Below are positions 5,593-59,101 of a DNA stretch of 64,000 bases, piece by piece. The first letter of the stretch is position 1, and every line of letters starts with the position of its first letter. The position numbers and the translations under genes are program-made. The notes under the pieces were generated by a model, which saw only the letters and a list, made by a program, of their open reading frames with translations, had not been told where the DNA came from and did no database searches. This stretch comes from Oculina patagonica (taxonomy: Eukaryota): assembly GCF_052425735.1 (NCBI RefSeq), contig NC_135758.1:31868001-31932000 (forward strand), read 5' to 3'.

Positions 5593-6151
5593 CTAGTATA
5601 TAAACAGCCAATCAGTGTTACCATACGCGTCAAGTTGAATGCAACCTGAATGTTTTGGAGACTGCCAAATATGTAAGAATGCCCGTTATAAAGAAAACCG
5701 TCACGGTCCTGATATAGAACGCATTGATACAATTTGGGTGGGGCTCGGGTACAATCCTAGTTCTGGATTATCTGTTTTAGAACATAAAAGATTCACAATG
5801 GCCATTTTTTATACTAGAGGACACATTAACCGTCCGGACGGATAGTGCGTCCCCTAATAATGAAAGAAATCTCCGGGCCATTTAACTTTTTATATGTGTT
5901 ATGTGGTGTGAATGTTTCTTCAGCTAAAAACATTCAGTTCTTTGCTTCCTTATCAAATACGAATGGATGTTTTGAGGGCCGCTTGTTTGACAGTTTTTAC
6001 TGTTTGTCGTTACCCTCCTTTAATAAAGTTGATTAATTGATTGACTTATCAAATAAATAAACCAAAAGTAGACCAAAAAAATGTCTTCAGGACTGACCAT
6101 TTTATATATTGCTTCTTTTTCGTGATTTTTTTTACCATTTCTTTGACCTCA

Positions 6152-9100
6152 TTAGTGGGTAGTTTTGTTCTTAGATTTATGGAGCATTTCTAATCGTGAT
6201 AACTTTTTAACAGCTCTGTGGACCAAATCATGTTCTGTTAATTTCCGGCTCGAATTTGTTTTCATCGATTTCCTGTCTGTAAATTTTGTGTTCCTTGAAA
6301 CATTTTCTGAGCGTTTCTTCACGAAAGGGCTGAGCACAGAATGCCGTCGTCTATCCCTGTTGTTCATTTCACCGCCATCGTCATCGTCATCATCTTCGCG
6401 ACCATCCGGGCCTTCATCTTCATCTCTTCCCATAATCTGTTGTTGAGCCATGAGCATCATCTCCCCTTGTATCTTTTCCTTTTCATAGCGGTTCTCCATC
6501 TCACGGTCTTCCATGTGATTTAACACACGCTTTAATGGAGTTGCGAGCACGTGAGCTAAGTTCTTCCAATCCTTGGAATCGGTCGTGCTGACAACAGCGT
6601 AGTTTGGTGGTGTTGCTCCAGGTCCCATTTCATTGGGACTGAACTCCGGCTCACACTGCTGTGAAAGGGCCTGGGCGCTGGCTTTTGCACGGTCCTGATT
6701 TTGTGCCTGTGCAACCTGCGCGTCGTATTCGCTCTGGATTCCCGCCAATTCTCGACTGGCTTCCAGCGACTTGGAATCACCGGGAAAATCCTGTGTTGCC
6801 TGTTGAACAAGCCTAGTGTGACCATGGCGGTTGTCTCGGCCAAATAATTTGATCACATTTTTAATGGCATTGGTGGCCTCTCTGATTTTGGTTTCTTCCT
6901 CATCTGACTTTGCCCTCGCCTCTTCACTTTCAGTTTGGAGGGCATATGAGGGCGGAAGCAAATTTCCTGGGTTTTCTTCTGTCGTGTACTTTAACCCTGT
7001 GGAGTGAGGGGAGTTTTGCACCTTGAAAACAGCTTCACCAGTGCCAGGCTTCTCATTGATAGTGAGTGTGACTTGCTTTCCTGATGAATCTGGTACAGCG
7101 GGTTTTCGATACGCTCTGTTCATCTGTTAATAAAAAGGAAATTTTTTATAAGGATGATTTTATCTACTCAAGAGCAAACACGAGCACTCAGAAAGTTGCA
7201 TCTTTGTTTTGCAATACTCAGGTGCACCTTTGCTCGACAAATGTATTAAAAATGTTAATTACAAGCGTGTAGTGTAATCAAGGCAATTAAATTACGTATA
7301 GTGTAATCCTGCCAGTTGAGTTGTGCTACTTTTAAACCTTGAGGAAAGAAGTATCATTATCTCTTAGCGACAACAGTCTAGTAGTAAACTCGCCCTGTGG
7401 ATTATTTGCTCCTGAGGCATGGGGTGAAATTTAGGTTCGCTTCTGTTTGCACTTACAGGTATTGCCGGTGTTTACGCGCAAGCGCGCGTAAACACCGCGT
7501 CAAACAGACATTTTACCCTCATCTGAATCATTCTTCTAACATGCACTGACCTCTACAATAGGGTTATTGATATTTCCATGCTTGTTACCCGCAACCATTC
7601 CTGCTAAATCTGACGGCATGCCTTCTAAGCTATGGGCCTTTAAAGTAGTGTCAGCCATGCTCGTTGAATTTACCATTGATGTGTCTTGCTGCGCATGCAT
7701 TGTCATTTGTTCAATAGCTTGCTGATTCACAGCATCGTCAGAGCTAACTGGCAAGATATTGTCTGGATTTTCTATTCCCTCGTCGTGTGTCACGTTGTTT
7801 TGTAAAGCATTCATCGCCTCAGTGTCTAAGCTTGGTGCATGCATCTTTAACTGCAAAGCACTGGTATCGGCATTACGTTCATATGTCTCTTCATGCATGT
7901 ATTGATCATTACGCAAGCGCTTGCTAACGGATGCTGCATTGTCTAGTAGCTCCGAGATCTCCTCTAGATCTGACTCAGGGACGTTGTCTTCACTGGGAAT
8001 CCTGGCAGTTGAGTTGTGTTCCTGAGCAGCCTTGACATAAGTGCTGTTTTCTCTTAGCTTTAACTGTCTACTAGTAAACATGCCTTGCGGACCTACATTA
8101 TTCTCTGCTCCTGGATCAGTGCGCTGTAAAGAATCAGCGTTCGTCAGAACGTCATTTACTTTCTTACTTGACTTCTCGCCGAGCTCATATCCCATTAACA
8201 CGACAACAGGATGCCTTTCTTTACTTTGATCGCTTACCTGTGTTGTGCCGCTAATGGAAGGAGCATCGGTTGGCGATGTGCTTATGTTCTTGGTCATTTG
8301 ATGAAACAGATTGAGCTGTGGAAAGTTTCCCTTTCATTTCATCACTTGTGGCTGTCTTAGTCCTAGTAGGTGATAAGGTATTTTGAAGGCTAATGTGAAA
8401 CTTGGAGAGCTGGCCAAGAACTTTTGGCGAAGCTAAAGAAATAAATAATTGTAAGTGTAACGTATTTAGCCCGGGGGGGGGACAAACAAACAAAAAATGA
8501 AGATGAATTTTAGGAAGCTTAAAAGAAAAACAGACATTGTTTTGTTGGCGTGTTTGCACGAAGACAAATTAAAAGATTCGATCTTGAAAATGATAGGCTA
8601 GATCGGAGGTGAATCAAATGCTTCAACAAGAGCTATTATTTAATGTGCCCGTGATCACAGCGCTAATGTCGGCTTAATTGTTAAAACCACAATCCTTCCC
8701 TCAATGTTGATCAAGTCTCTTAAGTTAAAATTATTTAATGAAAAAAATAAGTTACCACGTAACGATATTTTCTGGTAAGAAGCGTTGAGTGACGATCTAA
8801 GTAATGTCTTTGAAAGAGCTTCGCTGTGATAATGGCTCATACCTGAGATGCCGTGATCAATTCCATCTTCCAGTTGTGTTGCTATAGCACTGGCTGCATC
8901 GTCCACTTGTGGCGCTCTTTCTTTTCCCAGAATTTGTACCGCTGGTAACTTGGGCTGCGCCGCGGAAGACAAGCTATGCGCACTGGCTGGTTTTCTTGCT
9001 TGTCCCAAGATTCCCTTTACATCTATCACTTGCCATTGTTTCTGGCCTGGAACTAATAACAGACAAACTTTTCATCTATAAATAGTGAAATTCGTTTTAT

Positions 9101-9187
9101 GTATACAAAATATTTTATGTGTATTAATATGTTTGATGTATTTGTAAGATTTTTTTAATTAGTAATTTTTTTTTTTTTGGATTGAAA

Positions 9188-56827: not shown

Positions 56828-57533
56828 AAAAATAGTAGTTTTCCTGGGTTACAGTAAAATACATCAAAGAAGTAATGCTGAACAAACGAAAAATAAACAG
56901 GCCTGGATGTTTACATCTAAGGAAGATTATTTACGACCAAGTACCTCCTGTTACCAGTGAAAGAAGGGTTAATTTTCTACTTGTCGCCAAAAACTAACAA
57001 CCCATCCCCCACTTTGTTGTTTGTTGTATAGGTAAATGCATTGTGGTTTAGAGCGGTTTTTAAAGAGTTACAATCCAGTGAAACAATCACAGATCGAAGT
57101 AACTACATGTAGCCGGTGCGGAGCGCGTGAAAATGTGCGCGAGCGAGTCATGATTAGCGCGAGATTTTTAAACCACACACTAAGCTAAGAAAATGCAAAA
57201 TAAAAGATGCAAATTACTTTAGATATATACTCAAGCGAAAACTGCTCTATTACACGAAATACGTCTTGTTTGTATTAACGTTTATTATTTACTTTACTAC
57301 GAGCTACAGTCATCAACTTAGAGTGTACTTGCTTAGATCTCTGCGCTCATATTCTGCTGTTTTTCATGCACTTCTTGTTTTTATGTCACTTTATGCTGTG
57401 TGTTATAAAATATACACTAGTAAGTCTTTTCTAATCGAAAAGAAAGGTTTACTTCCTACACCAAAACATGCATATTTCATTTATTGTTCTTTGTTCCAAA
57501 CATCCGAGCCAGGAATGTCGATCCTGATTTTAT

Positions 57534-59101
57534 CTATTCGTCCTGATGGTGATGACTCTTCTTAACAGACTTGTCTTTTTTCTTTTCCTCAGATTTATCC
57601 TTTTTTCTCTTCTCGGATTTGTCCTTTACTTTTTCCTCGGATTCATCTTTATTCTTATTTTCAGATTCTTCATTTTCCGTCTCCTCGGGTTTGTCCTCCT
57701 TCTCTTCCTTTTCCTTCTCGGTCTTGTCCTGTGTCTTAGCGTCTTCCTTTTCCTCGCTCTTATCACTTGCTTTGTCCTTGGCAGGAACAGAGCTTGTCGG
57801 TGTGATCTGGGGTGGAACTGTAATAATAAGGCAAAAACGTCAGTTAGCTTTTGTTTATAGAGATTATCGATTGATCATCACAATTCATGGTTCTCCTATT
57901 TCTATGCATGCATGATTGTCCTTTTTCCATGGTTATGGGGCTCCGCTCTTGAAGAGCTCCGCTTATAGAGTTTAAAAAAGTAACTGCAACTTGAGAGGAA
58001 ATAAGCCATTAGTATAAACGCAATTGGGATTAGCTTTCCTAAAGGGCTTTTCAACATCAGTGCACAAAAACGCAGAAAGAGGATATAGAGTATATTGAAC
58101 CTTACCAGTAGGCGCAGCAGTGGTAGGTTGAGCTGCAGATGGGGCTACTGAAGGAGCTGGCTTGGCGCCAGCAGCGGCAGCGACAGCAGCTGGTGGACCT
58201 GCAGTGGAAGTGGTTGTGGCTGCGACAGCAGGCTGTGCTGGTGCGGCTGTTGATGCACCAGCCGCCGCTGGTGCTGGAGTAGTAGATGCTCCCGCTACTG
58301 GTGCTTGTCCGGCAGCAGTGGTTGTCTGTGTTGCAGCTGCTGGTGCGCCTGCGGCTGCAGGAGCAGCGGTGGCGGTAGCAGGTGCGGCGGAGCCTGGAGC
58401 TACTGTAGTTGTTGCCCCACCTGCAGCTGCGGGTGCAGCGGTGGGTGCCCCTGGCGCTACAGTTGTTGTTGCTCCTCCTGCCGCTGCAGGCGCAGCAGTT
58501 GGCGCACCTGGTGCTGCAGTGGTTGTTGCTCCACCTGCCGCCGCGGGTGCAGCACTAGCAGTAGCAGCAGGCGCAGCGGTTGGCGCGCCTGGTGCTACAG
58601 TGGTTGTTGCTCCACCTGCAGCCGCAAGTGCGGCACTAGCAGTCGCAGCAGGTGCAGCAGTAGGCGCACCTGGTGCTGCTGTTGTTGCGGCAGGCGCAGC
58701 GGTTGGCGCGCCTGGTGCTGCAGTGGTTGTTGCTCCGCCTGCCGCGGCAGGTGCGGCACTAGCAGTAGCGGCAGGCGCAGCGGTGGGCGCACCTGGCGCT
58801 ACTGTGGTTGTTGCTCCGGCTGCTGGTGCCTGTCCTGGTGCTGGTGCTACGGTAGTTGCTGCTCCGGCTGCAGCTGGAGGTGCTGGCGCAGCGGTGGCAG
58901 TAGCAGGAGCAGCAGCCGCAGGTCCGGGTGCCACTGTGGTTGTTGCTCCGCCTGCAGCTGCCGGTGAAGCTGGTGGTGCAGTAGTGGCAGCTGGTACCAC
59001 AGCTGCTTGTCGCCGATGGCCATCGTCGTGGTGATGATTCTTTTCTGAGTTGTGATGTTTTGGATGTTTTATGCTTTTAGCCGAGATGTCAGACACAGCC
59101 A
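57534..59101 (-). CDS. Ala/Thr/Pro/Gly-rich mucin-like protein with His-rich ends and a Lys/Glu-rich tail (last two exons; 5' exons unresolved)
   Basis: Exon 59101-58106 (phase 1-1, APAAAGGATTTVAPGAPTA repeats) and exon 57817-57534 (...KDKSEEKKKDKSVKKSHHHQDE*); AATAAA on minus at ~57480. Confidence 0.78.

Follow-up and report, generated by a model that had tools for sequence, protein, structure and literature searches.

A conserved block of genes for secreted ShK, CAP and mucin-like proteins between COLGALT1 and WDR83 in the stony coral Oculina patagonica

Introduction

Secreted proteins in which ShKT (ShK) domains are combined with mucin sequence are a known architecture in the nematode Toxocara canis, where tandem ShKT domains flank the Ser/Thr-rich core of the TES-120 mucins (Tc-MUC-1 to -5) (PMC3611597). 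Neither these mucins nor a ShKT protein of limpet mucus carries the toxin dyad (PMC7333891). In the coral Stylophora pistillata, cnidocytes and gland cells are the main sites of ShK gene expression, apart from two calicoblast exceptions (PMC8913943). Here we describe a 64-kb stretch of the Oculina patagonica genome (C1:31,868,001-31,932,000; hereafter the window, to which all plain coordinates refer), in which seven consecutive genes lie between COLGALT1 and WDR83 and share 7 ShK, 3 CAP and 2 SUEL domains among them. From left to right the genes are labeled A1, SUEL, A2, B, C, D and E. The genome searched comprises 529 Mb in 1,951 contigs, and two further coral assemblies, sp2 (ENA ERZ25878340) and sp3 (ENA ERZ25071797), were walked in 10-kb steps for comparison.

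The three CAP domains of the window (PF00188) place genes B and C in the CAP superfamily. The best solved relative of the second CAP domain of B (B-CAP2) is human GAPR-1 (1smb, E 1.5e-16), a protein without a signal peptide, whereas both B and C begin with a signal exon. The first CAP domain (B-CAP1) best matches pseudecin and pseudechetoxin, and B resembles these cysteine-rich secretory proteins (CRISPs) also in combining CAP with a small ShK-type disulphide knot. CRISPs, however, are contiguous CAP-hinge-ICR proteins, while B has the order CAP...ShK-ShK...CAP with disordered spacers of ~760 and ~310 residues separating its ShK from its CAP domains; the Pfam scan gave no Crisp (ICR) match and no contiguous CAP-hinge-ICR unit was seen. 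The S. pistillata gene LOC111324460 has the same CAP-ShK-ShK-CAP order as B and is collinear with it over the whole length, differing in the lack of six 30-aa repeats. Gene D, with three ShK domains and a Pro/Thr/Ser repeat, may follow the same logic as the Toxocara mucins. That likeness is one of architecture between different phyla; D adds a conserved Cys-free C-terminal exon, and the linkers of A and B are charged or polar and not mucin cores. The lectin gene has two tandem PF02140 domains with 8 Cys each in 212 aa, the typical size and layout of SUEL/rhamnose-binding lectins; it differs in being one diverged member of an expanded genome family, for which the genome search gave at least 118 hits, and in its location outside the conserved block, and its sugar binding is only predicted. 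Being a conserved chromosomal series of genes that grew by local duplication and whose secreted products are mostly disordered, the locus might also be likened in general terms to the vertebrate SCPP cluster. The window genes, however, are mostly non-paralogous and have folded Cys-rich modules. This is an analogy only and implies no link to mineralization.

Gene order and conservation of the block

The gene order is A-B-C-D-E-WDR83 in sp2 and COLGALT-A-B-C-D-E-WDR83 in sp3, the latter with a single A gene and no lectin gene. The ancestral content of the interval is thus five genes (A, B, C, D and E) between COLGALT1 and WDR83, and the second A copy and the two-domain SUEL gene, neither of which occurs at the sp2 or sp3 locus, were added in the O. 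patagonica genome. The lectin gene is accordingly a lineage-specific addition outside the conserved block. The block spans ~49 kb in sp3 and 57.8 kb in the window, where A1 and the lectin gene account for a 12-kb surplus. By the B linker, sp3 is as distant from the window as S. pistillata (46%) and clusters with neither the window nor Stylophora; it represents a third clade, and the block therefore existed before at least these lineages diverged.

Both flanks are housekeeping genes transcribed outward, away from each other. On the left, the first coding exon of a procollagen galactosyltransferase (COLGALT1-like; 4572-4805, minus strand) matches PDB 9evj/9u7h (E ~1e-7, residues 17-60), and its sp3 counterpart, 84% identical, adjoins A. 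On the right, the first large exon of WDR83, a MORG1-like WD40 protein (62623-63069, plus strand), matches PDB 9s2f, whose chain is named 'WD repeat domain-containing protein 83', with 180 bits over residues 13-116, collinear from the N-terminus. The same exon follows directly after E in sp2 (90% identical) and sp3 (72%). No COLGALT was found within 16 kb of A in sp2, where a satellite repeat lies to the left of A. This long satellite (sp2 L006:7092-9485) occupies the place of the short A-COLGALT spacer; two long open reading frames (ORFs) of 303 and 486 aa found there were rejected as genes, as they consist of one short peptide motif repeated.

An initial annotation of the window had described seven consecutive, apparently secreted genes between divergent housekeeping flanks, with the above domain counts and with no recognizable non-secretory gene in between, and it named the absence of conserved linkage in related species as evidence against a common cluster. 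All of these observations hold. The first exon of each of the seven genes begins with ATG, encodes a hydrophobic stretch, ends at a GT donor and reads by eye as an N-terminal signal exon, the domain counts are exact by regular expression and Pfam, and the linkage is conserved in both relatives. The conservation exon map against sp2 and sp3 showed nothing in the interval outside the seven genes, the sole additional coding-like piece being a retrotransposon fragment. The modular architecture, in which a signal-like exon precedes ShK, CAP and SUEL domains and the long low-complexity segments linked to them, was also borne out. The island was annotated at 6070-59101, and its right end needs adjustment, since the signal exon of E (59262-59298) lies just past it.

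Each of the families concerned is greatly expanded and lies mostly in arrays: the 529 Mb of the genome hold at least 455 ShK, at least 169 CAP and at least 128 SUEL candidates. An even spread would give ~0.075 such candidates expected per 53 kb, a figure to be read with the strong arraying of these families everywhere in mind, and the island is thus one of many: non-random, but not unique. An array of ~450 kb at C3:16.09-16.54 Mb contains CAP and ShK exons, sometimes 0.5-3 kb apart on one strand, and at C2:43.95-44.71 Mb a SUEL array abuts a ShK array. Both of these mixed secretory arrays are larger than the island in the window.

Domain content

A regular expression for six cysteines, the ShK pattern spanning ~35-40 residues, was applied to six frames of the window and returned exactly seven ShK motifs and no further match: one each in A1 (9502-9615) and A2 (23249-23362) on the minus strand, two in B (34801-34911 and 35971-36084) on the plus strand, and three in D (49619-49732, 51455-51571 and 53009-53119) on the minus strand. 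Both domains of B (B1 35.0 and B2 33.2 bits) and two of D (D1 34.8-35.8 and D3 36.1-36.3 bits) exceed the Pfam cut-off of 20.9 bits for PF01549, and the remaining three fall just under it (A1 18.9, A2 19.1 and D2 18.6 bits). All CAP domains pass the cut-off of 21.1 bits for PF00188 (B-CAP1 48.1, B-CAP2 46.7 and C 32.3 bits), as do both SUEL domains that of 31.4 bits for PF02140 (76.7 and 66.8 bits). A similar acidic Trp-Phe motif follows all three CAP units.

Every ShK domain is encoded by one exon of phase 1-1, 114-162 nt long and a multiple of three in length (7/7), and a single phase 1-1 exon is the classic form of a shufflable module. Identity is 66-88% between orthologous ShK domains and 29-43% between paralogous ones, from which it follows that the set of modules is older than these coral splits. 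In the second ShK domain of D, Lys-Tyr stands at -6/-5 relative to the fourth Cys, the position of the functional ShK dyad in the Cys3-Cys4 loop, and is a candidate dyad. In the HMMER alignment, however, Arg-Tyr and not Lys-Tyr of this domain is placed under the Lys-Tyr of the peptide OspTx2a. The Lys-Tyr of the A domain is displaced by three residues, and B1, B2, D1 and D3 have no dyad.

Genes A and the lectin gene

Genes A1 (6155-10528) and A2 (18200-25241), both on the minus strand, have one ShK domain followed by a charged tail of roughly 750 aa. A2, of ~811 aa, is the intact copy and adjoins B, as A does in the other corals. Its heuristic splice model, like those of SUEL, D and E, is based on canonical splice sites giving one open frame and on exon conservation. 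The exons of A2 are the signal exon 25157-25241, the ShK exon 23248-23409 and the tail exons ~22324-22644, 20241-21127 and 18200-19180, and their orthologues are 59-86% identical in sp2 and 45-75% in sp3. Those of A1, delineated from sequence and splice sites, are ~10444-10528 (signal), 9501-9662 (ShK) and ~8808-9071, 7539-8333 and 6155-7126 (tail). The A tail exon occurs in two copies only in the whole genome, and the duplication, in which 6154-10626 is repeated at 18210-25339 with 84-94% nucleotide identity, is local. A HMMER search of 1.84 billion representatives with the last exon of A returned only 6 short matches.

Relative to both A2 and the sp2 orthologue, an indel near 8279/8280 (within 8254-8333) breaks the reading frame of A1, its length being no multiple of three. 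The exons downstream of it remain open, and the dN/dS of the tail exons against A2 is 0.21-0.31. The A1 break may be recent, polymorphic, an assembly slip or bypassed. The dS between the two copies is 0.13 at the 3' end and increases to reach ~0.3 at the 5' end, a gradient that hints at gene conversion or uneven age. Upstream of the A2 signal exon, and outside the duplication, a block at 25487-25669 is conserved in one frame in both other assemblies (68% and 53%). It may represent a first exon that is not translated, or else a regulatory element of the A-B gap.

The lectin gene (12784-15722, minus strand) comprises a signal exon (15668-15722), domain 1 (15063-15331), domain 2 (13887-14180) and a tiny last exon (12784-12804), which carries the stop and completes domain 2 with its last strand and last cysteine; counting this exon, the two domains have 16 cysteines. 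The rhamnose-binding lectin motifs YGR, DPC and KYL are readable in both domains. The nearest paralogues are 52-58% identical and lie on another chromosome (C14:3.75-3.83 Mb).

Gene B

Gene B (29586-40316, plus strand) has 11 exons and encodes a protein of ~1,520 aa with the order CAP-linker-ShK-ShK-linker-CAP. The exons are 29586-29646 (signal), 31332-31780 (CAP1), 32170-34459 (linker 1), 34799-34912 (ShK), 35429-35491, 35966-36085 (ShK), ~36615-37487 (linker 2), 37793-37846, 38313-38611 and 39091-39234 (CAP2), and 39770-39865 (tail), with the 3' UTR reaching to ~40316. The open frame of 32170-34464 (765 aa), used as a query, found 35 proteins, three of which, of 1,283-1,312 aa, bear ShK and CAP domains. 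In tblastn these long homologues are collinear with the window from the signal exon at 29586 to the last exon at 39770-39862, and the 1,520-aa model aligns end to end with all three. One of them (P0011, 1312 aa) is encoded on a contig of 5,023 nt, which has no space for introns and must therefore be a transcript; another (P0018) is the S. pistillata protein XP_022783752.1 of 1307 aa (LOC111324460), listed as 'uncharacterized protein'. RNA contigs from three runs join 38611|39091 and 39234|39770 at GT..AG borders. The alternative of two separate genes, one with the CAP...ShK half and one with the ...CAP half, was rejected on the basis of the full-length orthologues and these joints. The product in the window is ~200 aa longer because of six 90-nt (30-aa) repeats in linker 1 (33579-34120; Tandem Repeats Finder, TRF), which are largely absent from the orthologues of 1,283-1,312 aa.

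Linker 1 is 59% identical in sp2 and 46% identical in both sp3 and S. pistillata, and B-CAP1 is 85-89% conserved among orthologues (85% in S. pistillata). When the orthologue of B-CAP2 is aligned with GAPR-1 (1smb), all four residues of the His/Glu/Glu/His tetrad coincide, and CAP2 of the window has the same residues. Most of the tetrad is missing from B-CAP1, and the strong conservation of this degenerate domain suggests that it would have a binding rather than a catalytic role. Searching with B-CAP2 and the tail for GAPR-1-like relatives gave no named proteins, and the literature searched, cell atlas supplements included, has no function or expression pattern on record for the S. pistillata orthologue.

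Genes C, D and E

Gene C (40835-43677, minus strand) encodes 209 aa with a signal, a single CAP domain and a short Trp-Phe tail. Its five exons (43623-43677, 43445-43507, 42604-42887, 42007-42165 and 40835-41232, the stop ending at 41164) are joined in RNA contigs, and all four introns are GT..AG on the minus strand. C aligns from end to end with P0070, a transcript-derived protein of 207 aa, at 74% identity, and its CAP domain is 54% identical to B-CAP2 and ~40% to B-CAP1. By reading of the sequence, three of the four tetrad residues are present. An intron position shared by B-CAP2 and C was considered and rejected, the positions being 18 nt apart.

Gene D (47620-54902, minus strand) has seven exons and encodes 441 aa: signal (54848-54902), ShK1 (53005-53121), a His/Ala/Pro linker (52473-52688), ShK2 (51454-51573), ShK3 (49615-49734), a mucin-type repeat (48655-49080; 5.7 x 30 nt by TRF, with 7 sequons) and the Cys-free C-terminal exon (47620-47891). 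All exons are conserved in sp2 and sp3, the C-terminal one being 84% and 80% identical, respectively; it matched no known family in Pfam, and a search of the ESM Atlas likewise gave nothing usable.

Gene E (57534-59298, minus strand), modeled from sequence and splice enumeration, encodes an Ala/Thr/Pro-rich, mucin-like protein of ~438 aa. Behind the signal exon (59262-59298) come an exon with a His-rich start and Ala/Thr/Pro repeats (58106-59101) and a Lys/Glu-rich tail (57534-57817). The sp3 orthologue has the same N-terminus and Ala/Thr/Pro repeats, and sp2 gave matches to the N-terminus and the Lys/Glu tail. In a homologue search with the Ala/Thr/Pro exon, low-complexity candidates swamped the output and none passed.

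Long Ser/Thr/Pro/Ala tracts were initially ascribed to the island as a whole, but mucin-like composition is confined to D (Ser+Thr 25%, Pro 17%) and E (Ala 38%, Ser+Thr 19%, Pro 14%, repeats of 42-123 nt). B is marginal (Ser+Thr 19-23%, Pro 6%) and A is not mucin-like (Ser+Thr 14-17%, Pro 5%), the tails of both being charged and polar. The suggestion that the modules sit on glycosylated scaffolds is therefore plausible for D and E by their composition, and weaker for A and B. N-x-S/T sequons number 22 in B, 8 in A2 and 7 in D. The models of the seven proteins, as read, have no hydrophobic C-terminal segment, and Pfam gave no match for any linker exon, the B tail or the Lys/Glu exon of E.

Expression

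RNA contigs from three likely RNA runs, belonging to three studies, were aligned to 38200-44100, a region covering the 3' end of B and all of C. Both genes are spliced in 3/3 contig sets. The C/B ratio of contig depth is ~4.9, 0.34 and 1.2-1.5 in these sets, and this ~14-fold spread gives no hint of tight coupling, although depth is a poor measure. Neither B nor C was seen in a run of polyA raw reads.

Repeats in the interval

For the retrotransposon fragment between A2 and B (27868-28623, plus strand), the genome search gave at least 2,553 candidate copies, many of them 92-99% identical and located on other chromosomes. Its 252-aa ORF, which has no Pfam match, was rejected as a host gene and assigned to a dispersed retroelement on account of this copy number. 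The family was recently active, and its 3' part lies outside Pfam coverage. Short repeats are found at 38791-38987 in a B intron and at 40564-40760, past the B 3' UTR in the B-C gap, with summed contig depths of ~3,000-11,000 and 240-470, respectively, in the RNA-like runs; their loose ends resemble a tRNA-derived SINE. Self-BLAST also revealed similar repeat units at 21215-22049 and 56616-56828, and a G-rich 27-nt tandem repeat in 6-7 copies occupies 55947-56170 between D and E.

Interpretation of the locus

The locus is best explained as a conserved microsyntenic block of stony corals, with lineage-restricted genes for soluble secreted proteins, that is not demonstrably a co-regulated unit; we consider this explanation probable. 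The block would have been put together from mobile modules, each of its ShK domains being a symmetric phase 1-1 exon. C resembles a partial copy of the 3' CAP unit of B, and internal duplication would account for the ShK domains of D as well as for the repeats found in B, D and E. A signal peptide would take each product into the endoplasmic reticulum, and release rather than anchoring is expected to follow because no transmembrane or anchor-like C-terminus is present. Outside the cell, long and probably glycosylated linkers may hold small disulphide-rich binding modules in a surface layer (mucus, glycocalyx or matrix). These modules comprise ShK knots, a predicted sugar-binding lectin and CAP domains whose metal-binding tetrad is either intact or degenerate. 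The likeliest role would be in surface defense or matrix organization, performed by gland or epithelial secretory cells, and we loosely favor secreted surface-layer or matrix proteins. Several points weigh against this explanation. Signal peptides were assessed by eye, and glycosylation and disorder were judged from composition alone. The frameshift in A1 is at odds with the low A1-A2 dN/dS, which leaves the state of this copy ambiguous. The expression evidence covers B and C only. The surface-layer function is derived from domain families, so that a role in venom or skeletal matrix is possible, and the conserved order of five unrelated secreted genes over deep coral splits could reflect regulatory constraint.

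That last point would favor the view of the initial annotation, which saw in the island a co-regulated secretory cluster (mucocyte, gland cell, cnidocyte or gamete coat). Shared enhancers or a chromatin domain would then switch the genes on together in a single type of secretory cell, and this common control would have kept their order. Five non-paralogous genes have indeed kept order and orientation in three coral lineages, unrelated genes have not inserted themselves, B and C appear together in the same three RNA data sets, and the conserved block upstream of A2 could be regulatory. The housekeeping flanks are conserved too, however, and slow rearrangement explains the order equally well. 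Contig-depth ratios of B and C, weak as this measure is, differ widely between runs, the intergenic gaps are several kb long and hold transposon fragments, and ShK, CAP and SUEL arrays are common in the genome and mix elsewhere, as on C3 and C2. The A-B gap, which exceeds 4 kb and has a transposon fragment in it, leaves no compact shared promoter. Co-regulation appears to us doubtful, and of the initial interpretation the architecture and the linkage are what holds, so that it is partly supported. We give somewhat less credence still to a stony-coral-specific 'secretome locus', in which shared regulatory elements would keep five unrelated genes together and the genes would be deployed jointly in a single type of secretory cell. 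In such a locus B, with its double CAP and double ShK, one CAP being catalytically intact by prediction and the other degenerate but highly conserved, might act as a scaffold cross-linking D and E in a surface layer or calcifying matrix.

Other readings concern the function of the products more directly. If the locus were a venom locus, ShK domains would block potassium channels and CAP domains would act as CRISP-like toxins in cnidocytes or venom gland cells, possibly after proteolytic release. The nearest solved relatives of D-ShK2 are ShK-like peptides of sea anemones (OspTx2a, E 0.057) and that of A-ShK is the toxin domain of MMP-23 (E 0.006), the best PDB matches of B-CAP1 are snake-venom CRISPs, the Lys-Tyr of D-ShK2 stands where the dyad is assumed to be, and most ShK genes of S. 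pistillata are cnidocyte- or gland-expressed (PMC8913943). The proteins of 440-1,520 aa are nevertheless dominated by disordered linkers, unlike the short ShK toxin peptides of cnidarians, the dyad is absent at the aligned position in 6/7 ShK domains, the CAP domains have no adjoining Crisp/ICR domain, and by reading of the sequences the ShK pair of B has no obvious flanking dibasic processing sites. Nematode ShKT-mucins and the limpet mucus protein also show that such proteins may lack toxin activity or dyad (PMC3611597, PMC7333891), and a venom locus seems improbable. Just as improbable is a biomineralization or skeletal-matrix locus comparable to the SCPP cluster, with calicoblasts making disordered, partly acidic proteins. 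It would agree with the apparent restriction of the genes to stony corals within the searches made, with an Asp run in A and with acidic stretches in linker 1 of B. The acidic content is, however, modest (Asp+Glu 12-16%), the literature search gave no link to published skeletal proteomes, and the accession of the calicoblast protein XP_022806382.1 is far from XP_022783752.1, weakly suggesting another locus. A chance juxtaposition of abundant families, or an artifact of pseudogenes or assembly errors, might be suspected from the abundance and arraying of the three families and from the A1 frameshift. Order and orientation recur in independent assemblies, though, the models have uninterrupted frames and canonical splice sites, and B and C are transcribed and spliced, so that synteny and RNA largely refute this idea and we regard it as highly improbable. 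The conserved block of secreted-protein genes thus stays the preferred explanation, and the locus is a real, conserved and fairly ordinary secretome locus.

Concluding remarks

The locus is not a new kind of system. It clearly illustrates the spread of ShK domains as symmetric phase 1-1 exons. The proteins of coral mucus, surface defense and matrix are poorly known at the gene level, and models of six intact proteins and one frameshifted copy are now at hand. Among them is a CAP-ShK-ShK-CAP protein of 1,300 to 1,500 aa, listed only as 'uncharacterized' and conserved across distant stony corals. Together, the five genes of the block form a defined set for testing co-expression in existing single-cell and tissue data of corals.

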